Shown here: in pieces, positions 25,619-64,000 of the stretch
How positions within the stretch are numbered: the stretch's first letter is position 1
Layout of the letters: each line of letters opens with the position of its first letter
From: Dendrobates tinctorius
Taxonomy: Eukaryota
Reading direction: 5' to 3'
NCBI RefSeq assembly: GCF_039654945.1
Contig: NW_027361924.1
Span: forward strand, 9,920,001 to 9,984,000
DNA: 64,000 bases
Made by a program: the position numbers and the translations under genes
The notes under the pieces: generated by a model
Database searches by the model: none
Told to the model about the DNA's origin: nothing
The model's input: the letters and a program-made list of their open reading frames with translations, nothing else

Positions 25619-25620
25619 CT

Positions 25621-25638
25621 TGGCGTAGTCGGCAGGAT
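25621..25638 (+). promoter_or_regulatory. Primer binding site complementary to tRNA-Ser
   Basis: tggcgtagtcggcaggat is the complement of the vertebrate tRNA-Ser 3' end (...ATCCTGCCGACTACG-CCA), 2 nt after the LTR. Confidence 0.9.
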
Positions 25639-26551: not shown

Positions 26552-27118
26552 AGGGCTCCGGGCTGGGGGGACGCTGCTCGGAGCCGAAAACCACAACTAG
26601 GGGTGGTGGAAGTCCCGAAGATTTGGTAGCAAAGTGTCCTGAAGTTTGGGCAGAAGTAGAGGGCCGGGCCGTCCGGTGTCTGGTGGACACGGGGTCACAA
26701 GTAACCACTATGCCCGCAGCGTACTTTCAACAAAACTTTCCGGAGGCAGCAAGGCCTCAGTGGGACCCATGATTAGACTAGTAGCCACCAACCAACTGCC
26801 GGTTCCGGTTGCCGGGGTAGTGTGGGTGCAGGTGACGTTGTGCGGTAAACTCCTCGGCCGCAGAGGGGTGGTGCTGACTCAAGGAGAAGCTGATCAACGA
26901 CACCCCGTCACCCTAGGCATGAATATCTTAAAAGAGTTTGGTAACCTGTTGCTTAATGATCCCACACAAAGGACACTGAAGCAGTGGGGTTCTCGCACAG
27001 CTCAGGGACAGGTATTCCAGCAGCTGGTGCGAGGTGCGCGGGTGCATCGGGACTGCCAGGAGGGTGAGGCTCTGGGCAAGGTCATCGCGACAGCGGCACC
27101 CCTGCTTGTGCTGCCTCC
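26548..27118 (+). pseudogene. Gypsy aspartic protease, frameshifted near 26760
   Basis: CLVDTGSQVT in ORF 26476..26772 continues in another frame (IRLVATNQLPVPVAG...VTLGMNIL) in ORF 26646..27134. Confidence 0.85.
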
Positions 27119-30100: not shown

Positions 30101-30226
30101 CTGCCCCCCTGTCTTCTCCCACAGCTGCGGCCCCGTCATCACCGACCTCAGGGGACGCCACCTCGCTATAGGCGGCCGCAGAGCCCCGTCCCGGTTACTG
30201 AGGGGACACTGAGCAGAGTTTGTTAA
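27119..30226 (+). CDS. pol: Truncated Pol: RT C-terminus, RNase H and integrase, reading through into the 3' LTR
   Basis: FEDHLKRL..., LHTDGS, NYSSFKLELLA, ADALSR, HHCC zinc finger, IHSDQG, YHPQGNGACERFN. No YxDD motif present. Confidence 0.9.
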   Translation, partial: FEDHLKRLGQVLSRLQKYGLKVKPQKCHLFRSQIEYLGHVVSAEGVRPSREKIAAIQEWPTPETVKDVRAFLGLAGYYRRFVKNFACRARALHDLLKGAPAGANGRKIQWQHPQEEAFRDLKAALSDAPVLAYADFSQPFILHTDGSLHGLGAVLSQVQDGRERVIAYGSRSLHDSERNPDNYSSFKLELLAVVWAMTERFAEYLAGSEVVVRTDNNPLAHLENAKLGALEQRWVARMAKYNYKIIYKRGAENVHADALSRIRHTTPGQNRDEKLEGEEIPFALTAAVLTNVDAKVSSPEAHRGILEQSRDKWIQQEQEDEEVGLLRKWVAAGQLPTDTQRQALTQDLSLMLRQWERLIIRKGLLYRKITSQTTSTTVWQMVTPGAQLHELAREAHEKGAHFGVKKTLQWLQQKVYHPRFSAVVEEVCRTCRLCELAKPPAQRAATQTIVTSEPFELLTVDYLHIGPAFQGYEHCLVMVDHFTKFAVVTPTRDQTAESAASAICRNFIQVYGCPQRIHSDQGACFLGKAMEELHHLYGIDKSRTTPYHPQGNGACERFNRTLIQMLRTLESDKKACWPEYVSELVWVYNNRVHRVTGYTPYFLLFGREGKGITEIELDPEEPRPWTGVSSWVRNHRHRLQTLHRIVHTKLQDWEHPGKNTTSPPYLQSGDRVLVLDQRPQNKLESCWEESPYRVLRRIHPEGPVYEIRPEQDETLPTRIVHRNMLCPCISTDPKQLEPVPKTSEPESICWDSDDEDFTPVRKGPPPNNEPVDTINPPASCSPPTPTTPEDSTPVELRRSERSTAGKPPERYEQDQFVWQQILTPLQANLNRLTPSPEDWRAYRVGECGEEDPHIVIGPEPGGPPSGLLKKPHQGNYKGRHAIEVVRATGGGARVKGAGDALRWQLEESLTGEREACGRGRTVATDGVRKRDRQETVKGKLETDRRATRKRLSPGFPPRRHSEKVTPADSLHGVTGPGSQATSATREQSGTVARTLPPCLLPQLRPRHHRPQGTPPRYRRPQSPVPVTEGTLSRVC

Positions 30227-30862
30227 TGTTTATGTTTTTTTTGAAACTGCGTCATGACCTGGCTGGGGAACGAGCGCCTCTAAACGGACGCCTGGGAGAT
30301 TTTCCCCCCGAACAGTCTCTTCAGGGCCTGTTGTGCCCCACCGTTCCCATTTCTTCAGGGCCTGTTGTGCCCCACCGGTCCAGCTTCTTCAGGGCCCGTT
30401 GCGCCCCACCGTTCCCATTTCTTCAGGGCCCGTTGCGCCCCACCGTTCCCATTTCTTCAGGGCCCGTTGCGCCCCACCGTTCCAGTTTCTTCAGGGCCCG
30501 TTGCGCCCCACCGTCCAGTTTCTTCAGGGCCCGTTGCGCCCCACCGTCCAGTTTCTTCAGGGCCTGCTGTGCCTCATCGTTCTGGTTTCTTCAGGGCCGG
30601 ACGAGCACAAGTCCTTCCGGGAAATCGTGGTTCCACATCTGCAACCCCTGAGTGGTCGTGAACTCGAGCGACGCCCGGAAGGCTAAGTGCATTATAGAAC
30701 CCTTTTTGTTTTACGAGTCCCTGCGAGGACAAATAGGTGTTTCCCCTTTGTTTGTTTGAAGCAGTTTAGCCCTCGCGGCTTTAAACTTATAAAAGTTTAT
30801 TTCACCCCACATTCAGTCTCGTGTCTCGTCACTGCATCCTGTGAGCCTGCTCGAACCCTACA
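29657..30862 (+). repeat. 3' LTR (1206 bp)
   Basis: Differs from the 5' LTR by about 5 substitutions, a 1-bp indel and one extra 33-bp repeat unit. Confidence 0.97.
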
Positions 30863-30990
30863 CATACAACAGGAAGAGGATGGAGGAGCCATGCATGCAA
30901 TAGGGGGAGGACGGAGGAGCTGTGCATACAACAGGGAGAGGACGGAGGAGCCATGCATACAAAAGGAGAAGGACGGAGGAGCCATGCATA
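30863..30990. repeat. 31-bp minisatellite, right part
   Basis: Same unit as 23665-24446, split by the gypsy insertion. Confidence 0.9.
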
Positions 30991-31636
30991 CAGGGAGAGA
31001 GAGAGAATGTTTTAAGGCATTTTTATTACTTACTGCAAAGTCAAAAGTTTCCATACATTTCATTAGTTTTTGGTACCATTGCCCTTAACCCCTTAACAAC
31101 CACTGATATGCCTTTTAATGGCGGCAGTTAAGAGTCCTTATTTCTCAGCACCGCTTTTTAACGGCGCTGAGAAATAGATGTGTAGCGTCCCTCCAGCGTC
31201 AGAAAATCTCTTGGATCTCGGCTACTTGGGGGTAGCTGAGACCCCAAGAACATGATTGGGGTCGGTTTTTACTGTCCCCAGTCACATAATGGCAGTCATT
31301 CACGGAATAACGACGATCACAAAAAAAGGCCAGTTTTCCATTCATTTCTCTCTCCTCTGATATAATCTAGCATACCAGAGTGGAGAGAAATGGGGTCCTC
31401 TGAGCCGCCCCCCCTGCTACCTCTGCCATTCCCGGACCCTCCGGCTCCATCCCAAAGCCCTCTGCATCATCTTCTATAAGAAAATGGGCAGTGTGCCCAC
31501 TGAGATCTGCCGGCCAGTACCCAGCAACAATAGGAGATTTTTCCTCTTGGTTCATTTTCATCGCTCTGATAGACCCAATCACAGTGATCAAAATTAAAAA
31601 AAATAGTAAATCAAACCCCCCTTTACCACCCCCTTA

Positions 31637-32179: not shown

Positions 32180-32465
32180 CAGTTAGGGTTGGGACTAGGG
32201 TTTAGGTTGTGTTGGTGTTAGGATTGTGTTGGGGTTACGGTTGAGGTGTTGGGTTGTGTTGGGGTTAGGTTTGGGGATGGGGTTAGGGTTGTGTTGGGGT
32301 TACAGTTGTGTTGGGGTTACGGCTGTGGTGTTGGGGTTAGGGTTGAGGTTGGGGTTACAGTTGTGTGGGGTTAGGATTGTGTTGGGGTTACGGTTGTGGT
32401 GTTGGTGCTGGGGTTAGGCTTGAGGTGTTAGAGTTGTGTTAGAGTTAGGTTTGTGGGTGGGGTTA
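32180..32465 (+). repeat. Degenerate TTAGGG/GT-rich telomere-like repeat
   Basis: Units ttagggtt, gttggggttac, ggggttagg. Confidence 0.8.
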
Positions 32466-33769
32466 GCCGCAAGCCGCGGTCTTTCCTGCCGGCTGTGACT
32501 GCATGGAGGTGAGTGGGCAGGCAGTGGCGGCTGCGGGTGGGGTCTGGTGTGGGTTTCCCACTGGTGGTACTGCCGAAGGGCCTGGTACCACCAGCAGGTG
32601 CCATATTGGAATACCCATCACTTGGGTATTCCAATATGGCGGTCGGCGTACTTCCGGTGTGGCGAGGTAGATGGGATTCGAGGATGTCCGGACAGAAGTG
32701 GATGATGGACAATTTTAGGTAAGTATATAATAGCTGCCGATTCGGAATGAGAGAACAATCACAGCATTCTGTGAGTGGCTATGAGACTCAGTTCAATCGC
32801 ACCCATACAAGTTGATGGGTGCTAGTAAAATATGGGAGTGCCCTTGGATGTCACCTCAGTGCACTCCCATATATGCCGAGGCAAGCCATGGATGAGATGG
32901 AGAAGTTATTTTCTTCATCTTCTCCGCACCTGTACTGCGATCCTCTCATACGAGAGAATCACAACCCAGTAGCTCTCGACCGCAGCAGAGCAGGAGCCAA
33001 GGGTCATATCGCATCGGATGCCGTACACTGGTGTGATTCCAGCCTTAGAGTCAGTGTCATGCACAAATCAGTCTTTCAGATCACAGCAAACTAAGAGGGA
33101 TAATTTTTGGACCATTTTTTTATTTTAAACACAGTAACTCAAGCGCTATCTACTGGACGTAGCCATCCAAAAAGTGAATATTGACTCTTTAAAGAGTGTT
33201 GTCACATGACTTCAAATAATAAGGCAGACTTAAGACATAGTTTCTACTTTCACTTATCTATCTTAATTCATGTGACGTGACTTGTTAAAGGTTTAAAGGC
33301 TTTTTGAGTTTTTAGACTCCCAGAGGAGCATGGTCTATACATCTCCCTGTGCCAATTTACTGCTCTCCGCAAGGAAAAACGTTATCCTTTGTCCCCCTAA
33401 ATTATAAAAAAAACACGAAGTCTCTCAGCGCTGCGTTATAAAGTGCGCTTTTCCTTGTTGCTGTTGGAGACTTTGTAATCTTGTAATTTGCTGCAAATCA
33501 AATTTTAGCCTCAGAGCGCAATAAGTATTTACAGATTTACTAACAGCGAGCAGACATAGTGAAGAATATACACAGCGTCTCTTAGAAGGTGATAGATCTG
33601 TTTGATATACAAGAATATTAATCTTTATGGACAAAAAAAACCTTTCTCCACTTTGTGTAGCTTTTCATGGAGCGACACCGCCACCTTGTGGTATAATGGG
33701 GGATAGCCTGTGTAAAATCTCCGCACTCCGATACATTACTGCTCAGTGATTTACACTTTTATTATTTCA

Positions 33770-34045
33770 TAACTAAGAGAAGACACAAGTCCATCCAGGA
33801 CAACCAACACCATAATGTGGATTCAGAAGGAGGCAAAAACCTCATGAAGAAGATGCAAATTCACTGATACTAAAGGAAAATACTTACATTTGTCTTTAAT
33901 GTTAATTCTCCTCTGTGTTGTTAACCTTACAATATTTGGTATCATGTGTAAATATTAAAATGTGTTCAGCATGTCACCCACCAGATCACTTATAAATATA
34001 TTACAAAGAGGGTCCAATACTGACCCCTGTGGTATCCACTGTAAC
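33770..34045 (-). mobile_element. Deleted CR1 LINE fragment (RT motif joined to 3' UTR)
   Basis: Minus strand reads degenerate [34 protein letters not shown] (CR1 FADDTK region). CR1-like 3' UTR aagacacaagtccatc...aggcaaaaacc. Confidence 0.75.
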
Positions 34046-34680
34046 ATATGTGTCTCCTCCCATACTGACCCCTGAGATACCCTTCATTTTTAAGTGACCC
34101 CTCTATTACTGACCCCTGGGGAACCCACTGTTATATGTGATGCTCACCAATAGTGACCCCTGTGGAACTCCACTGTTATATTTGACCCCTCCAAAATTGA
34201 CCCCTATGTTTCCACACTCTTACATATGACCCATTCAATACTGACCCCTGTGATACAGTGAAATTATATGTGACCTCTCTAATACTGACCCCCCCCCTTG
34301 GTGCTCCACTGTTATATGTGACCCATCCAATACTGCCCCCTATGGTACCCCACTGTTATGTGTGACCCCTTTTATTGAAACCTCTCTAATACTGACCCCC
34401 TTGGTGCCCCACTGTCATATGTGTCGCCGCCGTTACTGACCCTTGTGGCATCCCACTGTTACATGTGAGCCTTCCATTACATACCCCTGAGGTAACTCCA
34501 CTGTTATCTATGACCGCTCCAGTACTGACCTCTTCTACCTCATTTTTCTATGTGACCCCTCCAATACTGCACCCTATGGTAAGTCACTGTTATTTGTGAC
34601 CTTTCCAATACTGACCCCTGTGGAACCCCACCATTACCTCTGACCCCTCCAATACTAATCCCTGGGGTGATTTCATTACT
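34010..34680. repeat. Degenerate ~42-45 bp minisatellite (old copy)
   Basis: About 15 diverged units of ccaatactgacccctgtggtacccactgttatatgtgacc. Confidence 0.9.
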
Positions 34681-35239: not shown

Positions 35240-36900
35240 GAATTGTGTAAATACTGTGCTACTGTAGAGGTCTATGATTATCGCTGTAATCGCACTGACC
35301 CGAAGAATAAAGTCACCTCATCACTAATACCGCACAAGGAACAGCGTAAAAAAATAAATAAAACCAATTCTTCACCTGCTGTTCAATTTTTTATTCTGCC
35401 TCCCAAAGATCGCAGTAAGGCTTTGCGCATATTTATCCTGCGCTCTGCACTGAGCACTTGCATTGGGGATTGTGCTTAATTCTTGCAAAAATGTGATTCA
35501 GACAGAACCTCTGGCAGAAGATTCTCTATAATGAGGCAGATGGAGGCACTGTGCATGCCATCTGACGAGTGATCCGGCAGTGCCCATGATTTTAGGATTG
35601 CAAAAGAGTGCTGTTGGTCACAGTTTTGTGCACGTCTGAAAAGAAGGACACCATTGAACAGAGGCCATAAGGAGTCCAGAGTAACTCTGCTGCCTCATTG
35701 TAGTGAATGGACTCCTCGGGGGTGTCATCTGAATCATGTCACTCAGAGATTTAGATGGAAACCCCAAAGTAAGTGCTCAGCATAGAGCGCCGGATAAATG
35801 TGATCCTAAATGTTATGTAAAATGTTCCCAATAAAAGCTTCCACTCAATCCATAAAAAAGCAAGCCCCACTCAGGTCTGACATCTGTTAATGGAAATATA
35901 GGGGGCTTCCACATTACTGGTGGCACAAAGGCTCTGGAAAAGCGAAATGCCTCCTCACCTGCCAAAAGAAATTCAGCAAATTATCCCAAATTCAAATGCC
36001 CCCCTCCCTTCTGAGCCCCAGTGTGCCTAAACCACATATAGCGCCCACAAGTTTGGCATTTCTGTAGTGATGAGACCCTGCTTAACTTGCTGGTGCATGT
36101 CTCCAGAAGCACAGGCTGGGTATAATGTACTGGTGACTGCAACGTACTGGTCACTACAATGTACTGGTCACTACAATGTACTGGTCACTACAGCGTACTG
36201 GTCACTACAATGGCAGTTTGTAATTTTCACTTGACAACATTCATTGCTGCTAGTTTCCTGAAAATACCCATGGAGTTTAAATTGTCACTACATCTGTAGA
36301 TAAATTCCCCAAGGGGTATAGTTTCCCAAATGGGGTCACTTGAGGGGGGATTCTGCTCTTCTAGCAATTAGGGGCTCTGTATATGGAGTCCGCAAACTTC
36401 TAGGAAAATCTGCGCTCCAGGAGGCAAATAGCACTACGTCCCTCCCGAGTCTCTCCGTATGGCTAAGTAGTACTGTACAGCCACATATTGGGTATTGCCA
36501 CGTTCAGTAGAAATTGTGAGACAAATTTTGTTGCCATTTTTACCCAATTGTGTGAAAATGTAAAATCTAGGGCTAAAACCAAATTTTGGTGGTAAAAATG
36601 TAGTTATTTTGTCTTCACTGCTCAATGGTATAAAATTCTGTGACACACCTGTGGTGTCAATATGATCACTGCACCCCTAGAAGAATTCACTGAGAGATGT
36701 AGTGTGTAAAATGGGGTCACTTATGGGGGGGTTCTGCTGTTCTGGCCCCTCATGAGCGCTGCCAGTGGGTCATATCACCTGCAAACCATAACAGTAAAAT
36801 CTGGCGCTCCTTGCCTTCTGAGCTTTGCGCTGTGCCTGAAAAATATTTCCCGATTACATGAAGGGTGTAGGCGCACTCAGCAAGAAATGGGCCTCAGTTT
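35240..36900. mobile_element. Internal remnant of a long non-autonomous DNA transposon with a nested palindromic MITE (~35418-35805) and an 18-bp repeat (36130-36210)
   Basis: Inverted arms atttatcctgcgctctgcactgagcact / agtgctcagcatagagcgccggataaat; (gtactggtcactacaat)n; internal duplications of aaatggggtcactt. Confidence 0.5.
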
Positions 36901-38167
36901 GTTGTAACTTTGTAATCTTCTCATTCACTGCAAATCAAATTTTAGCCTCAGAGAGTAAATAAGTATTTACAAATGTACTAACAGCGAGCAGACATACTGT
37001 AGTGAAGCATATATACAGCGTCTATAGTCAATATTAGTGTCTCTAACCTGGAGTGTAACCATGAAGCCTTTGTCATGATCTGCTTAGTTCATGGGATTAG
37101 GTAGTTCAGAGGTTAATCTGGACAGCCTCACTCTAAGATTCTGGAGGCTTTTTATAGCCTCATTGTGGGCTCATTCCTCGTTGCTTATACTCAGATCCTT
37201 GGCCGAGTGTGTGACCCTGGTGTGCTTTGTGACTGTGATACTTTATGCTTGTTTGGTTTTGATCCGGTTCTGTCCCTGTTATGAGTTCTGCCTGTTCCTT
37301 TTTGTACTGCATTGCTATCTCTGTGTATGACTCATTGCTTACGTTCTGACTATTCTCTGCTTGCCTCTCTGGTACCACGCCACCCTCTCTGTGTATGACC
37401 CCCCCATTTGTCTGACCTGAGTTTCCCTAGTGTCACGTCGGCGGTGGTAGCTGCCGCCGTCCGAGCAGCGGCGGGGCCCGCCGCCGCCTATACTCACCGG
37501 TGCTCACCACGCCGCACTGTGCCTGCCTCCTCCTCGTTCTCATCAGTCAGGCGCGTGCCTGCTTCGTGCGGGCGCCTTAAGCCGCGGGCGCGCGCTCTGC
37601 AAGTCTATTAACCCTGCAGCACCCGCCCAGAAGCCTGAGCGCCCAATCAGCCAGCAGCACGGGGTATATCAGGCGTCTCCAGCATGGTGGAGATTATCGT
37701 GTGCCTTTCCTTACGGTATCCTGGCCAAGTGTTTAGGGGTTTCCCCTTCACACTCTCTCTCTCTCTAGTCCTGTACTCCGTGTCTCCGTCCTGCACTCCA
37801 GTGCCAAGTCCTGTACTCCTTGTCTCCGTCTTGCACTCCAGTGCCCAGTCCTGTACTCCGTGTCTCCGTCCCGTACTCCGCTCTCTGTGCCTGGTCCTGT
37901 ACTAAGTGTTTCCGTCCTGCACTCCACTCTGTACTTCCTACTCCATTCTGCATTCCATTCTCAGTCCTGTACCCCTCACTCAGTCCTTTGAGCCGCCCCT
38001 CTTGGTTCTAGCAGTCGCGGCATCTGTCTTCCGAGGGTCTGCGCCTAACGGCCCCTGTATAGGGGTCGGCACCACCTGGCGCGCTCACCCCCAGGAGCTC
38101 CAGTGCCGCGATCCAGAGGGTCCACTCTCGGACATAACCTACCTGGCAGTCACAGTATAATCAGGCC

Positions 38168-39192
38168 ATGGACCCTGCTAGCGCCTCGGCGGCCACCCAG
38201 AAAGAATTGCTCTTTTTGCGTGAAAATCAAACCAGAATAATGTCCTTTATGAAATCCATGGACACCCGCCTTTCCGCATTACAAACTACCGATCCGGGGA
38301 ATGCCCGTTACTAGCGGGACTCCAGCAGGAGCTCGCGCAGCAGCGTGACGCTCAGTCCCATATTCTGAGCTACATGGCATCCGTGGACTAACGACTCCAG
38401 TCCCTACAGTCCTCTGCTGCCGCTTCAGCTCTACCTCGGGACCCCCTATCCCATCCGCCACCACGCTTGGAGAAACCTCCCAGGTTTAGTGGCGACCCCA
38501 AGTTGTGTCGGGGGTTTTTAAACCAGTGCCGCTTGCACTTCGAGCTCCTACCTCAGCAATACCCCTCTGATCGGGCCAAGGTAGCTTTCATTGTGTCCCA
38601 TCTTGAGGGGGAGGCCTTAGCGTGGGTAAATCCCCTGTGGGAGAGAGATGACCCGGTGGTATCAAGCATCCACAACTTCCTAGATACTTTTCGCAGGGTA
38701 TTTGATGAGCCTGGCCGTGTGGCCTCCACCACTGAGGCTCTTTTCAATCTTCACCAAGGTTCTCTCACCGTAGGACAGTATGCCATCCGCTTCCGGACAT
38801 TGTCCTCTGAACTGGGGTGGAATAATGAGGCTTTGGTTGGGGCCTTTTGGAGGGGATTCTCCGGTAAAATAAAGGATGAGCTTGCCGGCTGAGACACTCC
38901 TACCACTCTGGAAGATCTTATATCCCTAGCTACCCATATAGATTTACGGTTTCAGGAACGCACCCGGGAGTCAGTTAGGGAGAAGAGATCTTTTAGGCTA
39001 TACCAAGCGCCCATTCCCCGCTCTCCGGCATCTTCTAGTAATTCCACTCCCGAGCCCATGCAAGTGGAACGAGTAAGGTTGTCCGAGCAAGAACGCAGGG
39101 AGAGAAGGACGCAGGGCCTATGCCTTTATTGTGGTGGGGCTAATCATTTTGTGCGTACTTGCCCAGTGCGGCCGGGAAACGCCTCCGCCTAG
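38168..39192 (+). pseudogene. gag: sushi-like gag (PEG10/RTL-related) with stops and a frameshift
   Basis: PPRFSGDPKLCRGFLNQC, LHQGSLTVGQYAIRFR, PEPMQV, CLYCGGANHFVRTC; GGGAAAC -1 slippery site at 39174-39180. Confidence 0.9.
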
Positions 39193-42100
39193 GCCAGGTA
39201 AGAGAGGCCTTCCTAGGTGACACCAATTCCTCTCTGCCCCTTACCATTTCGGCTTTAATTGTTTTAGGTCGGGAGCGCACATCTGTGGAGGCGTATGTGG
39301 ACTCGGGTGCGGCTGGTAACTTCATCCGGCTCAAAGAAGTGGACCAGCTCCGGATTCCGGTTGTTACATTAGAGAATCCACGCTCCATCGCCTCCGTGGA
39401 TGGCAAACCACTACCTGAACCCATCACCATGGTCACTGTCGAGGTGGAGATACAAGACAAGTTGGTGTTCTTCACCGAGAAAAAATCGCCTTTTATGTTT
39501 TGCCCAGTTTGTCCCACGCCGTGCTCCTCGGTTTACCCTGGCTTCGCCTACATGAGCCCGTTCTAGACTGGTGTTCCGGGGAGATCCTCCACTGGGGACA
39601 CTTCTGCCATGAACGCTGTCTGTTGCCAGTATCTCACCCAAGTCTGCAGCACGCTCCTATCGATCTTCCTGGGCTTCCTACGGCTTACCACTTGTACGCC
39701 GACGTCTTCAGTAAGAAGGAGGCTGAGACACTACCGCCGCATCGTGCCTTCGACTGCCCAATTGAGCTGATGCCAGGAGCGATTCCTCCCAGGGGAAGAA
39801 TTTATCCTCTGTCTCCGGCAGAAACCGCGGCCATGTCTGAATATATCCAGGAAAACTTGGCTCGGGATTTTATTCGGAAGTCATCTTCTCCTGCTGTAGC
39901 AGGGTTCTTTTTCGTCCGGAAGAAAGACGGATCCCTTCGGCCATGTATTGACTACCGAGGCCTGAACAGTATCACGGTCAAAAATAGGTATCCCCTTCCG
40001 CTGATCCCAGAACTCTTTGATCGCTTGAGAGGGGCCCAGATCTTTACCAAATTGGATCTGCGGGGAGCCTATAACTTGATCCGAATCCGTACCGGGGATG
40101 AATGGAAGACGGCCTTCAATACTCAAGACGGCCATTACGAGTATTTGGTTATGCCTTTTGGTCTCTGTAATGCCCCGGCGGTTTTCCAGGAGTTCGTTAT
40201 TGAGATCTTTCGAGACCTACTCAACTCATGTGTCGTCGTATATCTAGAAGACATACTCATCTTTTCCCCTGACCTATCCACTCACAGAAGGAGTGTTCGG
40301 CTGGTTCTGCAACGTCTACGGGAGAACAGACTCTACGCTAAACTAGAAAAATGTCTGTTCGCGCAAACGCCATTGCCCTTCCTAGGGTATATCATCATGG
40401 ACTCCGGAGTAAAGATGGACCCAGAAAAATTGTCTGCTGTGCTCAAATGGCCACGTCCGGTTGGAGTAAAAGCCATCCAACGGTTCCTGGGTTTTGCGAA
40501 CTATTACAGACAGTTCGTTCCCTTCTTCTCCTCGGTGACCAAGCCCATCTCTGCTTTGACCCGGAAAGGGACCAAACCAAATACCTGGACTCCAGAGGCT
40601 GAAGAGGCCTTTCTTGCCTTGAAACGGTCTTTTGCTACTGCTCTGATTTTACATCAGCCGTTAGTCAATAGGCCCTTCATCCTAGAGGTGGATGCCTCCT
40701 CTACTGGTGTGGGAGCGGTCCTCTCTCAGCCGACAACTTCTGGTCAAGTGGTGCCTTGTGGGTACTTCTCTAAATCATTCTCTCCCGCAGAATGCAATTA
40801 TGCAATTGGAGACCGGGAATTACTGGCCATTAAGATGGCTTTGGAGGAGTGGCGGTATCTTTTAGAGGGGGCAGTTCATCCATTCATAATTTTCACGGAC
40901 CACAAGAATTTGCTGTATCTTCAGTCTGCGCAAAGGCTCAACTCCAGGCAAGCCAGGTGGTCGCTATATTTCCCCCGGTTTGACTTCAAACTTCATTTTC
41001 GACCTGGGGACAGAAGCATCAAGGCAGATGCTCTATCCAGGTCCCTACAGTCACCTGAGGTTGAGGAGGGTTTGTCTCACATCACTGAGCCTGCCAAAGT
41101 TATCACCATGGCGCCCGTGACGCTCTCCCCCATTCCGCCAGGCAAGACCTTCGTCCCACAGAATAAGAGGTCGGAAGTCCTGGATTGGGGGCATTCCTCC
41201 AAGATTGCAGGTCACGTCGGGGTCAAGAAGACCCTTAGCCTTCTTTCGCGCTACTATTGGTGGTCTTCCCTTCGCCAAGATGTGACTGATTTTATAGCCT
41301 CCTGCACGACTTGTGCTCTGAACAAGGTGCCAAGAAGTCTGCTGTCCGGTCTGCTCCACCCTCTGCCTCCTCCTGAAGCCCCTTGGTGACAGATTGGTAT
41401 GGATTTCATTACCGATCTACCACGTTCTTCCGGGTGTACTACCATCTTAGTAGTGGTCGATCGCTTCTCCAAAATGGCCCATTTCATCCCACTGCCCGGA
41501 TTACCTACGGCATCTGAGCTGGCCGAGGTCTTCATACACCAGATCTTTAGGCTTCACGGACTCCCTCAACGAATTGTCTCCGATCGAGGGGTCCAGTTTA
41601 CCTCCCGTTTTTGGAGGGCACTCAGCAAGCTCATGGGTATATCTCTGGACTTCTCCTCTGCATATCATCCTCAGTCCAATGGGCAGGTGGAACGGATCAA
41701 TCAGGTATTAACAGCCTGCCTGCGTCACTTCTCTAACGCCCATCAAGACAACTGGGTGTCTCTTCTGCCGTGGGCAGAGTTCGCCCACAACAACCATCCT
41801 AATGAGTCCACCACCAAAACGCCGTTCTTTGTGGTTTCCGGCCAGAACCCTGGTGTTCCACTACCTTTCTCTACGCCATCTGGTGTTCCCGCAGCAGATA
41901 CCCTCGCTACCGAATTTTCTCAAGTCTGGAAGGAGACCAGAGAGGCACTTGAAAGATCCAGTATTCGGATTAAGAGACATGCAGACAAGAGGCGCAGGGA
42001 TCTTCCGCCATACCAACCTGGCGACAAAGTTTGGCTGTCAACTAAGCATATCCGCTTGAAGATACCTTCTTACAAACTGGGTCCTCGGTACATCGGCCGT

Positions 42101-42443
42101 TCGAGGTTCTGGGACGCATTAACAATGTGGCTTATAAATTGAGGTTGCCGGCTTTGCTTCGGGTCCCTAACGCCTTCCATGTCTCGCTCCTCAAACCTGT
42201 TGTTCTGAATCGGTATCACTCAGTCCCACCTCCTTCCCCTCAGCCAGTAGGGGCCGATAACGTCTTTGAGGTGAAAGAAATTCTTGCCATGAAAAAAGTT
42301 CGGGGGCGTACCCTCTTCCTCATTGATTGGAAGGGTTTCGGTCCTGAAGAGAGGTCCTGGGAACCCAAGGAGAATGTTAATGCTCCTCTTCTTTTAAGGA
42401 GGTTTTTGTCCAACCTCAGGAGAGGGAGACGTAAGGGGGGTAC
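39174..42443 (+). pseudogene. pol: sushi-like pol (PR-RT-RH-IN-chromodomain), disrupted
   Basis: YVDSGAAGNF; RT with YLED replacing YLDD; RH EVDASS; IN VSDRGVQF; chromodomain FEVKEIL...LIDWKGFGPEERSWEP. Frameshifts at ~39450-39500 and ~42100; stop at 41389. Confidence 0.93.
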
Positions 42444-44099
42444 TGTCACGTCGGCGGTGGTAGCCGCCGCCGTCCCAGCAGCGGCAGGGCCCGTCGCCTA
42501 TACTCACCGGCGCTCGCCACACCGCACTGTGCCCGCCTCCTCCTCGTTTTCATCAGTCCGGCGCGTGCCTGCTTCGTGCGGGCACCTTAGGCCACGGGCA
42601 CGCGCTCTGCAGGTCTCTTAACCCTGCAGCGCCCGCCCAGAAGCTTGAGCACCCAATCAGCCAGCAGCACGGGGTATATCAGGCGTCTCCAGCATGGTGG
42701 AGATGCCTGATTATCGTTTGCCTTTCCTTACGGTATCCTGGCCAAGTGTTTAGGGGTTTCCCCTTCACACTCTCTCTCTCTCTAGTCCTGTACTCCGTGT
42801 CTCCGTCCTGCACTCCAGTGCCCAGTCCTGTACTCCTTGTCTCCGTCCTGCACTCCAGTGCCCAGTCCTGTATTCTGTGTCTCCGTCCTGCACTCCAGTG
42901 CCCAGTCCTGTACTCCGTGTCTCCGTCCTGTACTCCAGTGCTCAGTCCTGTACTCCGTATCTCCGTCCTGTACTCCAGTGCCCAGTCCTGTACTCCGTGT
43001 CTCCGTCCCGTACTCCGCTCTCTGTGCCTGGTCCTGTACTCCGTGTTTCCGTCCTGCACTCCACTCTGTACTTCCTACTCCATTCTGCATTCCGTTCTCA
43101 GTCCTGTACCCCTCACTCAGTCCTTTGAGCCGTCCCTCTTGGTTCTAGCAGTCGCGGCATCTGTCTTCCGAGGGTCTGCCACTAACGGCCCCTGTATAGG
43201 GGTCGGCACCACCTGGCGCGCTCACCCCCAGGAGCTCCAGTGCCGCGATCCAGAGGGTCCACTCTCGGACGTAACCTACCTGGCCATCACATCTAGTCTT
43301 TACTCCTTTCTACCTTTGGTGTCGCAGGTCCTGTCTCGGAACTTTCCCTGCAGTATCGGACCCCGGGCTCTCCCGTAGCCTGGGTGAGTTACCCTGCTCA
43401 GCCATGGCAGTCAGCCGGCGCTGACAGGATCCTGATAGCCTTATAATTTTATTTTTTTTTAACTGTGTAACCATCAAGTTCTGTGCCTCTCTCCTGCGTG
43501 TTACTGTCAAGCTTATATGTTCTCAGCCGGCTGTAACTAACAAGCTGAGATGCTTCCAGTGAAATAATACCTGTTCCAGTTCTATGTGTCATTATTAACT
43601 GCGTCATCCTCCACTGTGGCCAATACCACAGTCTACCAGCCTAGCATTCACTGTTGTATATTTAATCAGTGGTCGGATGGCTTTCCCTCCTCCTTGGGTG
43701 TCAGCCATTCTTCAGTTTCTTCTTTACTAGCCACCGGCATGATGTTAGGCCGCTCAGCTTATATGATCATCAAACCAACCTACATGATGTCCTGGTGGAG
43801 CAATGTCCACTGTGGGGCCAGAAGCAGAGCAGGAGCAATTGCCTGCACTGACAGCTCCCGACAGTAATGCATTATCACATAATATTATAACTCAGGTGAG
43901 CATGAGCGCTTGAAGCTTTCCACTTACACAATTATAATTTTTACCTGCAATTGCCAATGGAGGAAACATATTGCATATTGTGAGGCAGTGAACGGAGTTA
44001 TATGCGAGGGTCGTGATGTGTCGTCCAGGATGTGCACAGCAGCATATTGAGGCCGCTGGTGTGCAGGTATAACTGTGATTGCAATGCAAAATAAAAGTA

Positions 44100-47849: not shown

Positions 47850-49608
47850 ATTACAGAAGATCGACTCTCCACTCTACTCTTAAGATCACATCTCACTACC
47901 TGTGCATTTGACCCGATCCCATCCCACTTCATCCCAAACCTCACCACAGTCTTCATCCCAACCCTAACCAATCTCTTCAACCTATCACTAACAACTGGTG
48001 ATTTCCCCTCAAGCTTTAAACATGCCTCAATCACACCTATCCTAAAAAAAACCCTCTCTTGACCCATCCTCTGTATCTAGCTATCGCCCTATATCACTTC
48101 TCCCCTATGCCTCAAAACTACTGGAACAACACGTCCATCTTGAACTGTCCTTCCACCTCTTTTCTTGCTCCCTCCTTGACCGCTTACAATCTGGCTTCGG
48201 GCCACACCACTCCACTGTATCTTCCCTAACTAAGGTCACCAATGACCTAGTAACTGCCAAGGCCAAGCGACACTACAGACCCTCTCATCTCTTGGTATCA
48301 CAGACTTGGCCCTATCTTGGATCGCACCATACATAACAGACTGGACATTCAGCGTCTCCCACTCGCACACCACCTCCTCACCGCGCCCCCTATCCATTGG
48401 AGTCCCACAAGGTTCAGTCCTAGGGCCCCTGCTCTTCTCCATTTACACCTTCGGCCTCAGACAGCTCATAGAATCTCACGGCTTTCAGTATTACCTCTAT
48501 GCTGATGACACACAGATCTACATCTCTGGACCAGATATCACCTCCCTACTAACCTGAATCCCTCAATGTCTGTCCACTATTTCATCCTTCTTCTCCACTA
48601 GATTTATAAAACTTAATATGGCTAAAACAGAATTGATCATCTTTCCCCATCTCACGCGACCCCCCCAACAGATCTATCTATTAAAGTAAACGGCTGCCCA
48701 CTCTCTCCAGTCCCACAAGCTCGCTGCCTTGGGGTTATCCTTGACACTGATCTCTCTTTCAAACCACATATCCAAGCCCTTTCCACTTCCTGCCAACATC
48801 AACTCAAAAACATTTCACAGATCCGTACATTCCTAAACCCAGAATCTGCAAAAACCCTAATCCATGCCCTCATCATCTTCCACCTTGACTACTGCAACCT
48901 TCTGCTCTGTGGCCTCCCCTCTAACACTCTCGCACCCCTCCAATCTATTCTAAACTCTGCTGCCCGACTAATCCACCTGTCCCCCCCGCTATTCCCCGGC
49001 CTCTCCCCTCTGCCAATCATCCACCTGTCCCCCCTCTATTCCCCGGCCTCTCCCCTCTGTCAATCCCTGCACTGGCTCCCCATTACCCAAAGACTCCAGT
49101 TCAAAACCTTAACCATGACATACAAAGCCATCCACAACCTGAGTCCTCCATACATCTGTGACCTCGTCTCCCGGTACTTACCTGCACTCAACCTCCGATC
49201 CTCACAAGATCTCCTTCTCTACTCCCCTCTTATCAGCTCTTCCCACAATCGCATACAAGATTTCTCCAGCGCATCCCCCCTACCCTGCAACTCTCTACCA
49301 CAACATCTCAGACTCTCGCCTACCATGGAAACCTTCAAAAAGAACCTGAAGACCTACCTCTTCTGACAAGCCTACAACCTGCAGTAACCACCGATCCACC
49401 AAACCGCTGCACGACCAGCTCTACCCTCACTTACTATATTCTCACCCATACCTTGCAGATTGTGAGCCCTCGCGGGCAGGGTCCTCTCTCATCCTGTATC
49501 AGTCGTGACTTGTATTGTTTAATATTACTGTACTTTTATGTATTATGTATACCCCTCCTCACATGTAAAGCGCCATAGAATAAATGATGCTATTATAATA
49601 ATAATAAT
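47850..49608 (+). mobile_element. 5'-truncated L2 LINE with (AAT)n tail
   Basis: [40 protein letters not shown]; tail ataataataat; interrupts the Gmr1 integrase (VIERVA|MQDRIAAV). Confidence 0.93.
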
Positions 49609-49708
49609 ATGCAAGACCGGATTGCAGCGGTCATGCCTATCGTAAAGGAGCATTTGGTGAATGCTCAGGCAGCACGGGCCACGGTCCGTTCTTTTAAAGC
49701 AGGAGATC

Positions 49709-55759: not shown

Positions 55760-56188
55760 GACCATAGTCACACTACCGTATAACACAGCAGAGTGATGTG
55801 CGATAAAACATCACATAGCACTCTACCCAGTGTTATTCTGTGGGACAGCTCAGATCTGTGATTATTATCTCATGCCGATTTGGGATGAGAGAACAATCGC
55901 AGCATTCTGTGAGCGGCATTGAGATTCAGCTCAATCGCACCCATACAAGTCTGAGTGCAAGTGAAACATTGGACTGCACTCAGATGTCACCCCAGTGCAT
56001 TCCGATATATGCCATGGATGAGATGGAGAAGTTACTTTCTCCATCTTCTCCGCACCTGTTCTGCGATCATCTAATGTGAGACAATCACAGCCCAGTAGTA
56101 TAACACTCGGCTCTCGATCGCAGCAGAGCAGGAGCCAAGGGTCATTAGCATATCGCATTGGATGCCATACGCTGATGTGATTCCAGCC
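55760..56188. mobile_element. Harbinger-like MITE; a truncated paralog lies at ~32735-33044
   Basis: tagtcacacta ... gtgattccagcc|tta; internal sequence shared with 32735-33044. Confidence 0.6.
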
Positions 56189-56238
56189 TTAGAGTCAGTG
56201 TCCTGCATAAAACAGTCTTTCAGATTGCAGCTAACTAA

Positions 56239-59200
56239 GGCCCCTTTCACACGTCCAGATATTTCCGGTACCGGAAAAAACGATACCGGAGATATCCGTT
56301 TCCATGTGTCCATGTGTGTAATACGTGCGGCACATGGGTGGCAACTGTGTGCCACTCATGTGTCACATCAGTACCACACGGATGGCTGCCAGGGAAGAAG
56401 CGCCACTGTAAGCGCTGTTCCCGGCGGCAGGTGCTAAATGCTGCTTTCATCATTCTCCTCTGCTCTGACGGCGATCGGCGCGAGCAGAGTAGAATGAATG
56501 AATGAAAAACCCGATATGGGTGCCCCCTATGTTTTTGAACCAACCCTGGCAAACCTCACAGCTGGGGGCTGGTATTCTCAGGCTGGTAAGGGGCCATGGA
56601 TATGGCTCCCCCCAGCCTAAAAACAGCAGCCCGCAGCTGCCCAGAAAAGGTGCATCTATTAGATGAGCCAATTCTGGGGCTTTGCCTGGCTCTTCCCACT
56701 TGCCCTGTAGTGGTGGCAAGTGGGGTTAATCTTTGTGGGCTTAATGTCACCTTTCTATTGTAAGGTGACATCAAGCCCATGGCTTAGTAATGGAGAGGTG
56801 ACTGTCAATAAGACACCTATCCATTTCTAATCCTGTGGTTGTTAAGGGGTTAAATAAACACACAGCTAGAAAAAATTATTTTAATGAATTAAAACACCAC
56901 ACAGTTTTCCCATATTTATTGTACTCCTAATCCAAGCGATGCCCTCGATCTCCTGTAATAAACATAAAATAATAAACCAACAATATACCATACGTGCCCG
57001 TTGTTCTGTCTCACGCTATAATCCATATCTGGTGAATCTGGTGAATAATCAGTTTATAACCGTATCGGTGCTAAGATGTGACTGCCCTGGCTGCAAACTT
57101 CTGGTGAATGAATGAGAAGCTGCGGGTGCAGGCTCAGTAACTTCAGGACTGTGGGAGAATGCCAGTGATGAGGTCACAGCAGTTCAAGCTCTGTCACAGT
57201 GACCTCATCACTTGCATTCTCCCACGGTCCTGAGGTCACAGGAGTTCATGCCTGCAGTGAGCACAGACTCAGTGACGTCACCGCTAGTTACTGAGCCTGC
57301 GCCTGCAGCTTCTTACTCATTCACCAGTAGTTTACAACCGGGGCAGTAGCATCTTAGCACCGCTCCGGTTGTAAACTGTATATCCCCCAGATATGGATTA
57401 CGCCGTGGGACAGAACGACAGACAGGTATGGTATAATGTTGGTTTATTATTTTATGTTTATTACAGGAGATCGAGGGCGTCGCTTGGATTAGGAGTACAA
57501 TAAAGATGGGAAAACTGTGTGGTTTTATTTCATTAAAATAATTTTTTCTTGCTGTGTTTATTTAACCTTTTAACAACTATAGGATTAGTAATGGATAGGT
57601 GTCTTATAGACGCCTCTCCATTACTAAGCCATGGGCTTGATGTCACCTTACAATACAAATGTGACATTAACTCCACAAACATTTACCCCACTTGCCACTG
57701 CTTACAGGGCAAGTGGGAAGAGCCAGTCAAAGCTCCAGAATTGGCACTTCTAATAGATGCACCTTTTCTGGGCAGCTGGGGGCTGCTGTTTTTAGGCTTG
57801 AGGGGCCCATATCCATGGCCCCTTACCAGCCTGAGAATAGCAGCCCCCAGCTGTGAGGTTTTCCAGGTTGGTTCAAAAACATAGGGGGAACCCATATTGG
57901 GTTTTTCATTCATTCATTCTCCTCTGCTCGCACCGATTGAAGGCAGAGCTGGGGAGAATGATGAAAGCCGCATTCAGGACCTGCCGCCAGGGAACAGCGC
58001 TTACAGTAGCGCTTCTTCCCCAGCGGCCATCTGTGTGGTACTTGTCCAGCGTGGATCTGACAGATTTAAATGGATAAGTGAACTTTTTTTCCTTTGGCTA
58101 GGTGCCAAAGTGGGTTGATTGCCCCCGGTGGCCATTAGAATTATTACATGTGGTGTTTCATTCTAAGTTGCCCGGTGGTGGTGAGTGGTATCGCACCTTA
58201 GTTTTAGGGTTAATGTGCTCGCAATTACAAATCAGGTGTTAGGCTCTATAAAAGGGAGCCAGGTGTGTTCAATCACTGGTGGTGATATTGTGTTCGTCAT
58301 TCGGGAAGCAAGCCTGGGTGAGGAAGGAGCTGAACATGAGTCCTGTGCAGCCCAGCCAGAGGGGACGAGTGGCAGCTAGGTGGTTCAAGAAGGGCTGGCA
58401 TGACGTGATGGAGTCACAGTTTATTGTCAGCAGGAAGTGCTTGCATGGCTTGGTGGAGTGACGACAATGGAGAGAGTTGCACTCAGCATGCGGGACTTGG
58501 TTGCTGAGAGCTGGACTCAAGCATGCTTGACTTTTTGGGCAGGAGCTGAACTCATCTTTGGGACTCTGTTAATGGACTGCGGCAACTGGTGGTGGACTCT
58601 GCTCCAAGGCTGCACTATGGTGAAGGATCCAGTTATGGTGATGGATCCGGGTGGAGGAGAAGATGCACGCAGGTGGTGGGCTCTGTTGCTAGGAGCGTAC
58701 GCAACAGAGCAAAGCTAAGTGGTGTTTCCCCTGTATTGTCATTTTCCCTCATGTGTGTTTAGTGCAGTGGTGGGATTAGTTTCCGCACCGACCAATTCCC
58801 TAGTGAGGGTTTAGGGTCAGGGCGAGCTAGGGTTTCTAGGTTCATGTTGGCCGCCCGGTGCGAAACTGGCATAGGGAATGTTAGGAGTGCAGGGACACTG
58901 GCTCAGGGGAGCTCAGGAGGTCTCCACTTCCCTATTCCCTATCGCAGGACCCACCATTGTTAATGTTTCCCAGGTTTCCCTTATTGTTTAAATTCGCCTT
59001 ACTGGAGGTGGGGTTTCCAGACTTGTATATACGTGTAATGTCTAAATTCGCCAGTTGGAGGCGGTATATCCAGCTGCACGTGTTTATTATTTAAATTCGC
59101 CCCACTGGAGGCGGTGTATCCAGGGTCACGTGTGTCATATGGGTTCGCCTTGCGGTACTGGCTGCGTCCAGACACACGTGACCGTGACAGTACTGATGCG

Positions 59201-59301
59201 GCACATGAGCTGCACAAGGTTGCCACACGTGTGCCGCACGTATTACACACACGGACACGGATATCTCCAGTACCGGAAATATCTGGATGTGTAAAAGGGC
59301 C
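56239..59301. mobile_element. Long fold-back Harbinger-like MITE (~1.9 kb plus a nested solo LTR)
   Basis: TIR ggcccctttcacacgtccagatatttccggtac / gtaccggaaatatctggatgtgtaaaagggcc; TAA TSD; ~0.9-kb inverted arms centred near 57200; empty site at 33092. Confidence 0.9.
58043..59189. mobile_element. Solo LTR (1147 bp)
   Basis: tgtcc...tgaca termini; perfect 5-bp TSD GTACT; the MITE arm resumes after it. Confidence 0.88.
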
Positions 59302-59646
59302 TAAGAGGGATAAGTTTTGACCCTTTTTTTTATTTAGCCCCTTAACGACGAGCTGTTTTTGATTTTGCATTTTCATCTTTTGCTCCCCTTCTTCCCAGAG
59401 CCATAATTTTTTCATTTTTTGGTCAAAATGGCTACATGAGGGCTTGTTTTTTGTGGGATGAGTTGTACTTTTGAACAACAGCATTGGTCTTAACATGTCC
59501 TGTACTCAAAAATGGGAAAAAAAATCCAAGTCCTGTGAAATTACAAAAAAAAGTGCAATCCCACAGTTTTTTTTTTTTTATCATGTTCACTAAATGCTAA
59601 AACTGTCCTGTCATTATGATTCTCCAGGCCATTACGAGTTCATAGA

Positions 59647-60013
59647 GTAAAGACTTATTGTGGTCCAATACATACAATGCATGACAAGCGGTGGATACCG
59701 CATCTATCATCCTGAGCACCTAACTAGGACTGGATGGTATGCCTCATATACCTGGCATTATCTTAAGCCAGAGTGCCTATAGATACTGGACTGCTTTCTC
59801 TTGCGGGGTGATCCCCACAATTTCTCAAAATATACATTTTTAGTACATTGAGGAAGGTCTATATGACCGAAACGTTTGTTTATTGTATGTATTGGAACAC
59901 ATTAAATCTTTACACTTCAACATCTGGTGTGTGCCAGGTTTACTACACAAGTTGGTACAGTTTGGGAACCTACTTGAGCACCATCTTTCAGTTGTGCTAA
60001 CACTTCTTCTGCT
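59647..60013 (+). mobile_element. Short Penelope-like/retrozyme-like insert with a minimal hammerhead motif
   Basis: Flanked by a 16-bp duplication attacgagttc(a/g)taga; contains aca-ttgagga-aggtc-tatat-gacc-gaaac-gtt-tgt. Confidence 0.65.
59845..59879 (+). ncRNA. Putative minimal type I hammerhead ribozyme (C3U variant)
   Basis: Core UUGAGGA...GAAA, stem II ggtc/gacc, palindromic stem III AACGTT, short stem I aca/tgt. Confidence 0.5.
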
Positions 60014-61409
60014 ATTACGAGTTCGTAGACACCAAACATGTCTAGGTTCTTTTCTATTTAAGTGGTGAAAAAAAATTCCAAAGTTTATTAAAAAAACATT
60101 GCGTCATTTTCCGATACCCATAGCGTCTCCACTTTTCGTGATTTCAGGTTGGATGAGGGCTTATTTCTTGAATGCCGAGATGACATTTCTAATTATATCA
60201 TTTTGGTGCAGATATGATCTTTTGATCAAAAAACATAATTCTGGGGATTTTAATTTTTTTCTCATTACGCCGTTTAGCAAAGGCGTTAATTCTTTTTTTT
60301 ATATTGATAGATCAGGCGATTCTAAATGTGGCGATACCAAATATGTGTATGTTTGATTTTTTTTATTGTTTATTTTGAATGCGGCGAAATGGGGGTGATT
60401 TGAACTTTTATTTTTTTTTTTTTTAATATTTTTTAAAAAATTTTTTTTTACTTTTTGCATGTTTGAATAGTCTCCATGGGAAACTAGAAACTGCACTTGT
60501 CCGATCGGCTCTGCTACATACAGGCGATAATCAGATCGCCTGTATGTAGCAGAATTGCTGACTTGCTATAAACACCGACCACCAGGCGGTGCTCATAGCA
60601 ATCCAACAGTGACAAACATAGACTTCTGGTTGTCATGCCACGATCACGTGACAAGGTCACCGATGGGCGGGATTTCCAACGTGCTTGCCAGAAGAGTGAG
60701 TTAAATGCCGCTGTCAGAGTTTGACAACGGTATTTAACGGATTAACAGCCGCTGGTGGATCGCAATTCCATCCGTGGCTGTTAGAGGCACATGTCAAAAC
60801 AGATGACATGCCAGGAAAGATGTGGGCTCACCGCCGAAGCCCATATCTAAGGGAGGGAGTCCGACATCAGCATAAATTTATGCCCAGTGTCGGAAAAGGG
60901 TTAAAAAACACTAACTCAAGAGCTATATATTGAAATTAGCAATCTAAAAAGTCAATCATGACCTCAAATAATAAGACAAACTAAAAACTCAATTTCTAGT
61001 TTCACGTAACTATCCCAGGTCATGTGACATGACTTGTTAAAGGTTTAAAGGCTTTTTGCATTTTTAGGTTCCCAGGCAAATTCCAATTTGAAAAGATTTG
61101 ATCATCTCTTATCGCAACAAATCCTCCGCTGTGAGAAGAATGTCAGGATTTCAACCTCAGAGAGTAAATAAGAATTTACAGATTTACTAACAGCGAGCAG
61201 ACATAGTGAAGAATATACACAGCGTCTCTTAGAAGGTGATAGATCTGTTAGATATTCAAAAATATCAATCTTTATGGACAAATAAACCCCCTTCTCCACT
61301 TTGTGTAGCTTTTCATTGGTGTGACACCGCCACCTTGTGGTATAATGGGGGATAGCCTGTGTTAAAGCTCCCGCTCTCCGATATATTACTGCTCAGTGAT
61401 TATTATGTG

Positions 61410-61670
61410 ATAATTAAGAGAAGACACAAGTCCATCCAGGACAACCAACCCCATAATGTGGATTCAGCAGGAGGCAAAAAACCTCATGAAGAAGATGCAA
61501 ATTCACTGATACTAAAGGAAAATACTTACTTTTGTGTTTAATGTTAATTCTCCTCTGTGCTGTTAAACTTACAACATTTAGTATCTTATGAAAATATTAA
61601 AAATGTCTTCAGCATGTCACCAACCAGATCACTTATATATTACAAAGAGGGTCCAATACTGACCCCTGAG
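61410..61670 (-). mobile_element. Deleted CR1 fragment, paralog of 33770-34045
   Basis: Closely similar to 33770-34030; runs directly into the satellite. Confidence 0.75.
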
Positions 61671-64000
61671 ATACCCTTCTGTTATATGTGTGACCCATCC
61701 AATACTGACCCCTGTGGTACCAACTGTGATATGTGTCCCCTCCCATACTGAACCCTGAGATACCCTTCTGTTTCACGTGAGTTCCCTGTTACTGACCTCT
61801 GTGGTACCCACTGTAATATGTGTGACCCATCCAACACTGACCCCTGTGGTACCCACTGTGATATGTGTCCCCTCCCATACTGAACCCTGAGATACCCTTC
61901 TGTTTCACGTGAGTTCCCTGTTACTGACCTCTGTGGTACCCACTGTAATATGTGTGACCCATCCAACACTGACCCCTGTGGTACCCACTGTTATATGTGT
62001 GTGACCCATCCAATACTGACCCCTGTGGTACCCACTGTTATAGGTGTGTGACCCATCCAATACTGACCCCTGTGGTACCCACTGTTATAGGTGTGTGACC
62101 CATCCAATACTGACCCCTGTAGTACCCACTGTTATAAGTGTGTGCCCCATCCAATACTGACCCCTGTGGTACCCACTGTGATATGTGTCCCCTTCCATAC
62201 TGAACCCTGAGATACCCTTCTGTTTCACGTGAGTTCCCTGTTACTGACCTCTGTGGTACCCACTGTAATATGTGTGACCCATCCAACACTGACCCCTGTG
62301 ATACCCACTGTTATATGTGTGTGACCCATCCAATACTGACCCCTGTGGTACCCACTGTTATAGGTGTGTGACCCATCCAATACTGACCCCTGTAGTACCC
62401 ACTGTTATATGTGTGTGCCCCATCCAATACTGACCCCTGTGGTACCCACTGTGATATGTGTCCCCTCCCATACTGAACCCTGAGATACCCTTCTGTTTCA
62501 CGTGAGTTCCCTGTTACTGACCTCTGTGGTACCCACTGTAATATGTGTGACCCATCCAACACTGACCCCTGTGGCACCCACTGTTATATGTGTGTGACCC
62601 ATCCAATACTGACCCCTGTGGTACCCACTGTTATAGGTGTGTGACCCATCCAATACTGACCCCTGTAGTACCCACTGTTATAAGTGTGTGCCCCATCCAA
62701 TACTGACCCCTGTGATACCCACTGTTATATGTGTGTGACCCATCCAATACTGACCCCTGTGGTACCAATTGTTATATGTGTGTGACCCATCCAATACTGA
62801 CCCCTGTGATACCCACTGTTATATCTGTGACCCATCCAATACTGACCCCTGTGGCACCCACTGTTATATGTGTGACCCATCCAATACTGACCCCTTTGGT
62901 ACCAATTGTTATATGTGTGTGACCCATCCATTACTGATCCCTGTGGTACTCACTGTTATAAGTGTGTGCCCCATCCAATACTGACCCCTGTGGTACTCAC
63001 TGTTATGTGTGTGACCCATCCATTACTGACCCCTGTGGTACTCACTGTTATATGTGTGTGCCCCATCCAATACTGACCCCTGTGGTACTCACTGTTATAT
63101 GTGTGTGCCCCATCCAATACTGACCCCTGTGATACCCACTGTTATATGTGTGTGACCCATCCATTACTGACCCCTGTGGTACTCACTGTTATGTGTGTGA
63201 CCCATCCAATACTGACCCCTGTGGTACCCACTGTTATATTTGTGTGCCCCATCCAATAATGACCCCTGTGGTACTCACTGTTATATGTGTGTGCCCCATC
63301 CAATACTGACCCCTGTGGTACCCACTGCTATATGTGTGTGACCCATCCATTACTGACCCCTGTGGTACTCACTGTTATATGTGTGTGCCCCATCCAATAC
63401 TGACCCCTGTGATACCCACTGTTATATGTGTGTGACCCATCCATTACTGACCCCTGTGGTACTCACTGTTATGTGTGTGACCCATCCAATACTGACCCCT
63501 GTGGTACCCACTGTTATATTTGTGTGCCCCATCCAATAATGACCCCTGTGGTACCCCCTGCTATATGTGTGTGCCCCATCCAATACTGACCCCTGTGGTA
63601 CCCACTGCTATATGTGTGTGACCCATCCAATACTGACCCCTGTGGTACTCACTGTTATATGTGTGTGCCCCATCCAATACTGACCCCTGTGGTACTCACT
63701 GTTATGTGTGTGACCCATCCAATACTGACCCCTGTGGTACCCACTGTTATATTTGTGTGCCCCATCCAATAATGACCCCTGTGGTACTCACTGTTATATG
63801 TGTGTGCCCCATCCAATACTGACCCCTGTGGTACCCCCTGCTATATGTGTGTGCCCCATCCAATACTGACCCCTGTGGTACCCACTGCTATATGTGTGTG
63901 ACCCATCCATTACTGACCCCTGTGGTACTCACTGTTATATGTGTGTGCCCCATCCAATACTGACCCCTGTGATACCCACTGTTATATGTGTGTGACCCAT
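61650..64000. repeat. Homogeneous 43-47 bp satellite array, open at the window end
   Basis: About 50 units of ccatccaatactgacccctgtggtacccactgttatatgtgtgtgac with higher-order blocks. Confidence 0.97.

Follow-up and report, generated by a model that had tools for sequence, protein, structure and literature searches.

The window analysed here (64,000 nucleotides of Dendrobates tinctorius DNA; JAYMGB010000258.1:9,920,001-9,984,000 of GCA_039654945.1) lies, together with the tandem array described below, within an olfactory-receptor gene cluster, as indicated by three intact olfactory-receptor ORFs on the plus strand (2509-3429, 8964-9896 and 18524-19453), which match 7tm_4 with E-values of ~1e-43 to 1e-47. 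Olfactory-receptor gene models are the only ones called in the assembly, and there are no records for the array and the ORFs near it. The window also contains two Ty3/gypsy-type elements, one at ~23000-31100 (a 1028-aa ORF that encodes RNase H and integrase, but of the reverse transcriptase, RT, only the tail) and one at 37428-43291 (RT, RNase H and integrase), the latter with LTR-like repeats (37428-38154 and 42441-43291; 88-96% identity). Two L2-like LINE RT copies (1014-2237 on the minus strand and 48331-49609 on the plus strand, both with ...YADDTQIY) are 77% identical to each other, and a 123-aa ORF at 7416-7787 on the plus strand is the remnant of a DNA transposon (match to DDE_3 transposase, E=1.8e-7).

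The far end of the window is occupied, on the minus strand, by a tandem array (array A, 61652-64000), for which TRF gives a period of 47, 51.0 copies and 85% matches, in agreement with the more than 2.3 kb reported at this place in the preliminary description of this DNA. The array continues to the last base of the window and comprises at least 51 monomers, its distal end being located beyond. Pattern search, TRF and monomer spacing indicate that most monomers are 47 bp long, with 43-46-bp variants close to the junction with the flank. The 28-nt core of the monomer has 42 matches in 61699-63981 with up to 3 mismatches (0 expected in shuffles), and the same search of the window returned one extra match, at 34014. 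ORFs on the minus strand of the array carry the repeated peptide QWVPQGSVLDGSH. Higher-order structure is evident from a 186-bp period (TRF) and from repeats of 132 bp (corresponding to an old trio of monomers), ~273-280 bp and 513 bp, revealed by lag identity and self-BLAST, the blocks being 88-97% identical among themselves. Four monomers proximal to the junction (a1, a2, a3b and a3a, 61652-61828, minus strand) stand out as old in the identity matrix.

The junction between array A and its flank is bridged by read-derived contigs at 61494-61708 and 61477-61708 with 0 differences, hence it is not an assembly join; the read runs behind these contigs may come from the assembly's own sample. Folding of monomer dimers gave z-scores of +0.5 to +1.1 relative to shuffles, i.e. 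no propensity for hairpins, and slippage driven by DNA structure was rejected, as the dimers fold no more stably than shuffled sequences.

On its proximal side, array A abuts a decayed LINE RT block on the minus strand (VSQGSVLDPLCNI / ISDLVGDMLKTFLIFS, a stop, DTK). In what we call copy A, this block spans 61547-61681, and monomer a1 contains the first 8-10 of its codons. Beside the first monomer, the minus-strand frames give RRVSQGSVLDPLCNI, YISDLVGDMLKTFLIFS and DTKCCKFNSTEEN, and the block as a whole translates as RRVSQGSVLDPLCNI / (Y)ISDLVGDMLKTFLIFS / DTKCCKFNSTEEN, with breaks due to one frameshift and one stop. The flank thus reads, in register, as the unamplified RT continuation with which the first monomer had been proposed to be contiguous. 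Further away, at 60901-61546 (minus strand), copy A has a low-copy flank that aligns to 33124-33904 and is thereby common to both copies of the locus (see below). It may represent the remainder of the LINE, i.e. the RT beyond this point and the 3' part; tblastn and an RT profile run over all frames of both flanks identified no RT homology past the DDTK in this ~600-bp flank. An out-of-register match of the RT profile in the flanks (E=0.04) was discarded as not credible.

The same flank, junction and array are present again 27 kb away, at 32735-34668 (copy B, minus strand). Array B (34013-34668) consists of 14 decayed monomers of ~44 bp (TRF, monomer list and identity matrix) with a mean pairwise identity of 66%. 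Its consensus has 44 nt and a single open frame, with all 14 codons free of stops. Both arrays are built of head-to-tail copies of a single unit (47 bp x 51 in array A, 44 bp x 14 in array B), and the 47-nt consensus of array A differs from the 44-nt consensus of array B by the loss of one G from the SG codons and by additional CA dinucleotides. Tandem amplification of a ~45-bp piece, as originally put forward, is therefore upheld as to the process but not as to the size, the ancestral unit being 44 bp according to the array B consensus. A degenerate telomere-like array of GTTAGG/GTTGGG variants (32182-32466; periods 6, 17 and 71-82) is located ~270 bp from the end of the copy B flank.

The RT block of copy B (33905-34041, minus strand) reads QWIPQGSVLDPLCNIFISDLVGDMLNTF in frame and continues, after a frameshift, as LIFTHDTKYCKVNNTEEN. 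It lies across the boundary between array and flank (34012/34013) and is better preserved than its counterpart in copy A, with the monomers on its 5' side in the sense orientation. Past the far end of array B, tblastn within the window detected no RT-like sequence, which fits amplification at a 5'-truncated end, an observation made at copy B only.

The flank of copy B (32735-33904, minus strand) is collinear with copy A in BLASTN and in alignments. The corresponding segments, all on the minus strand, are 33502-34012 and 61148-61651, 33124-33323 and 60901-61075, 33091-33125 and 59301-59335, and finally 32735-33095 and 55873-56239, the last pair with 81% identity. The first pair comprises 498 aligned bases with 93.2% identity (K2P 0.072). 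In copy A, insertions (56240-59300 and 59336-60900) lie between the distal block 55873-56239 and the remaining blocks, and the distal block might also be a repeat copy of independent origin; if the 32735-33095 block is an unrelated repeat, the duplicated segment may be shorter. According to summed contig depth, the insertion 59336-60900 holds very high-copy repeats, with values of 10^4 to 4x10^5 at 59500-59651 and 59956-60867, typical of very abundant repeats, and ~1,200-1,600 at 60868-60943. Many contigs skip ~383-421 bp between 59605-59646 and 60014-60057, and the skipped stretch looks like an insertion into an abundant repeat. A third fragment of the flank (125 bp, 36900-37023, minus strand) has the same orientation as 33462-33580 and 85.6% identity to it (BLASTN). 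Both copies and this fragment are thus located within 30 kb and share one orientation, which favours a local duplication over retrotransposition as the probable source of the two copies.

In both copies the junction reads ...GGGGTCAGTATTGGA followed directly by CCCTCTTTGTAATAT..., i.e. the parent fragment is joined in register to the array. The identity matrix also reveals orthologous monomers (a2 and b1, 84%; a3b and b2, 82%; a3a and b3, 78%), each of these values being the maximum of its row or tied with it. Since b1-b3 have orthologues in copy A, at least three monomers predate the separation of the copies. Moreover, the monomers of array B (66%) diverge far more than the flanks of the two copies (93%), which places the first amplification long before the duplication.

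The relationship of the monomer to LINE RT was analysed with the help of an independent element and of a profile. Scanning metagenome contigs for a sequence pattern yielded one locus, whose 698-aa ORF has 788 protein relatives; RVT_1 is present in 120/120 of those listed and an AP-endonuclease domain in approximately a fifth of those listed, hence this locus is a genuine LINE, independent of the frog copies. In tblastn its ORF aligns across the boundary between array B and the flank, over SVWEETHMLQWIPQGSVL-DPLCNIFISDLVGDMLNT (E=4e-7 within the candidate set, 0.003 within the window). The RT profile was built from 104 LINE RT sequences, and for scoring each break in the blocks was bridged by an X. 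Copy B obtained 14.8 bits when read through in this form (best of 2000 shuffles: 8.8) and 11.5 bits in frame, and copy A 8.0 bits read through (best of 2000 shuffles: 4.3); in other words, the score was reached by 0/2000 shuffles for either copy, which goes against the possibility that the flank similarity is a chance short match. The DDT box of copy B falls at the expected profile columns 115-117 (in-frame block IPQGSVLDPLCNIFISDL...HDTK), and according to the profile both copies have the NDL...ADD of the RT block at the correct LINE spacing. Over its whole length, the monomer is collinear with 14-15 RT codons. These comparisons lend good support to an RT origin, and the monomer most probably is LINE RT coding sequence, with homology demonstrable over ~35-45 residues only. 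The alignment with the independent LINE, the RT profile and the open 14-codon consensus of array B all speak for the reading of the minus-strand monomer given in the preliminary description.

Other searches contributed less. Pfam did not report RVT_1 in eight stop-free pieces at E-values up to 10, and a phmmer search of a 42-aa piece against 1.84 billion proteins returned no usable RT match and no CR1; its matches to NHL-repeat proteins were rejected as due to chance, summed over repeats. In the ESM Atlas, RVT_1 is found in 14-24% of the members of the top two clusters (score 0.88), which we take as a lead only. The search for homologous proteins gave no candidates for the 42-aa piece and the array ORF, and only close relatives of the metagenomic LINE when the corresponding region of that element was used; the PDB sequence search with short RT pieces and the search of viral contigs returned nothing.

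As to the parent element, the motif VPQGSVLGP is common to the window's own L2-like LINEs, which have SIYT...YADDTQ and a longer spacer. The motifs NIFINDL and FADDTK and the spacing of the DDTK box in the frog fragment are features that we take to be CR1-like. Judged from these motifs and the spacing, the parent LINE is probably of a CR1-like clade.

The copy number was estimated from read-derived contigs of four runs of one sample, matched to the window at >=80% likeness. Along the flank 60944-61627 the summed depth is ~10-30 in most bins, compared to ~6 for a single-copy contig, and the contigs listed for the flank are one perfect and one ~88% identical. Contig depth suggests that the flank occurs in approximately two copies genome-wide. 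At the first monomers the summed depth is 370-1500, and it is 825-2100 at the bulk-type variant (single-copy contig: ~6), which suggests ~70-350 monomers genome-wide, or 3-16 kb, an order of magnitude, as depth is not equal to copy number. The term "satellite DNA" used in the preliminary description is thus probably too broad as written, and on this rough basis of depth the data suggest a locus-bound minisatellite and not a genome-wide satellite.

Taken together, it is quite likely that the array is a locus-bound minisatellite whose unit goes back to 44 bp of LINE RT coding sequence, multiplied in tandem at the 5' end of a dead, 5'-truncated fragment. The proposed history would begin with a LINE fragment starting within the RT domain, presumably as a result of 5' truncation, whose first 44 bp would have been duplicated head to tail to give a short array. 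This seed array would then have decayed, before a local duplication gave rise to copy B (32735-34668) and copy A (~55873/60901 to past 64000), with the junction retained in both. Copy B would have remained at 14 monomers and continued to decay, and a few monomers of copy A would have been re-amplified into an array of higher-order structure that counts at least 51 units. The units re-amplified in copy A may have been a b1/b4-like unit, grown to 47 bp by CA gain, and the old trio in the form of a 132-bp block. Because the seed array predates the local duplication, array A at 61652 is best interpreted as a later re-expansion and not as the founding event. Since monomer dimers fold no better than shuffles, we assume that the amplification proceeded by ordinary unequal exchange or replication slippage. 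We also presume that the array is neutral; nothing in the analysis suggests a function for it.

In the preliminary description, the array had been proposed to result from amplification in situ, with the founder junction still attached, i.e. array A at 61652 would have been born in place from the truncated end of a CR1 element. The intact, in-register junction and the contigs that bridge it without differences agree with such an origin. We nevertheless consider it improbable, as copy B has the same junction together with a much older array of 14 monomers at 34013-34668, of which b1-b3 have orthologues in copy A, and the contrast between its monomers and the flanks of the two copies places the amplification before the duplication. 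Birth in place could be rescued only if copy B had been duplicated from copy A after that event, and even then the 47-bp array of copy A would be secondary. The claim of in-situ amplification with a founder junction at this position is therefore not sustained.

It could also be envisaged that the array, the RT fragment and the 3' part form a non-autonomous mobile element, retrotransposed by means of the LINE 3' end with the arrays travelling along. In both copies homology indeed stops on the 3' side, with unrelated sequence past it; however, the read-derived contigs contain only ~2 copies at >=80% identity, these copies and the third fragment are confined to the same 30 kb in the same orientation, and neither a terminal repeat nor a target-site duplication was observed, which makes such an element very improbable. 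The conserved motif covers only 8-10 codons of the monomer, and one might accordingly suspect that an unrelated minisatellite happens to neighbour a LINE fragment or that a LINE was inserted into a pre-existing minisatellite. Yet the RT alignment passes from the last monomer across the boundary into the unique flank without a change of frame, which excludes a chance neighbour; in addition, the old consensus is open over all 14 codons, none of the 2000 shuffles reach the profile score and the array is found on the 5' side only. We thus regard coincidence as hardly credible, and LINE insertion into an older minisatellite was rejected, as the RT frame continues into the monomer. The reading that we prefer remains a seed array made from the 5' end of the fragment, duplicated together with its flank and re-expanded in copy A.

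Satellites derived from LINE ORF2, including those from CR1, have already been published, and the kind of repeat described here is known. In chicken, a portion of CR1 ORF2 belongs to the HinfI tandem repeat (Li & Leung 2006, cited in PMC6947457 and PMC9659126), and centromeric repeats derived from CR1-C are known from the same species (reviews: PMC6947457, PMC9659126). According to these citing accounts, the HinfI repeat and the frog array both hold LINE ORF2 sequence in the tandem unit; the HinfI unit, however, comprises the 3' UTR and partial ORF2, whereas the frog unit corresponds to 44 bp of RT (14-15 codons). The frog array also has the parent fragment still joined at its edge, unlike the HinfI repeat as described there, and its LINE is of a putative CR1-like clade. 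L1 ORF2 gave rise to the satellites PROsat of Phodopus roborovskii and Pvc20 of the harbour seal (PMC9659126), so that these tandem repeats, like that of the frog, stem from LINE ORF2 coding sequence. PROsat and Pvc20 originate from mammalian L1 and are listed as satellite DNAs, whereas the frog array is low-copy and locus-bound (~70-350 monomers, a rough figure).

An independent parallel surfaced in a phmmer search: at 2267-4693 of a locus from GCA_977066385.1 (CDRUQA010009902.1; L002), a 59-bp x 41 array is located inside an L2-like LINE and has been predicted as a 615-aa "protein" (P0002), with a unit that encodes a 19-residue RT stretch. RT sequence is found upstream (1642-2267) and downstream (4629-4760, ...YSDDTQLYLS) of this array. 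It shares with the frog array the same RT block in the unit, a length of ~2.4 kb and flanking RT that is still readable, but it belongs to a different LINE clade (YSDDTQLY box) and differs from the frog unit in boundaries and length. Furthermore, the L002 array is internal, with RT on both sides, while in the frog no RT was seen past array B. Arrays of more than 2 kb with different boundaries, in two unrelated clades and two genomes, might indicate that the RT-block DNA of LINEs is intrinsically prone to seed minisatellites. We find this doubtful: L002 was found with a motif-carrying query, which implies a strong ascertainment bias and does not demonstrate a hotspot, and folding against shuffles revealed no hairpin propensity in the frog unit.

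In transposon-derived minisatellites in general (PMC6947457, PMC9659126), expansion by slippage or unequal exchange starts from a short stretch within a dead transposon copy, as presumably in the frog, and the frog array is not fundamentally different from them. Existing knowledge remains unchanged by it, and it may be of use in teaching and in the repeat annotation of the frog genome. What it offers in comparison is a clean and datable case of the birth of a tandem repeat from a transposon within one 30-kb stretch, where an old decayed array and its young re-expanded paralogue can be viewed side by side, together with the source codons and the junction that has been preserved.
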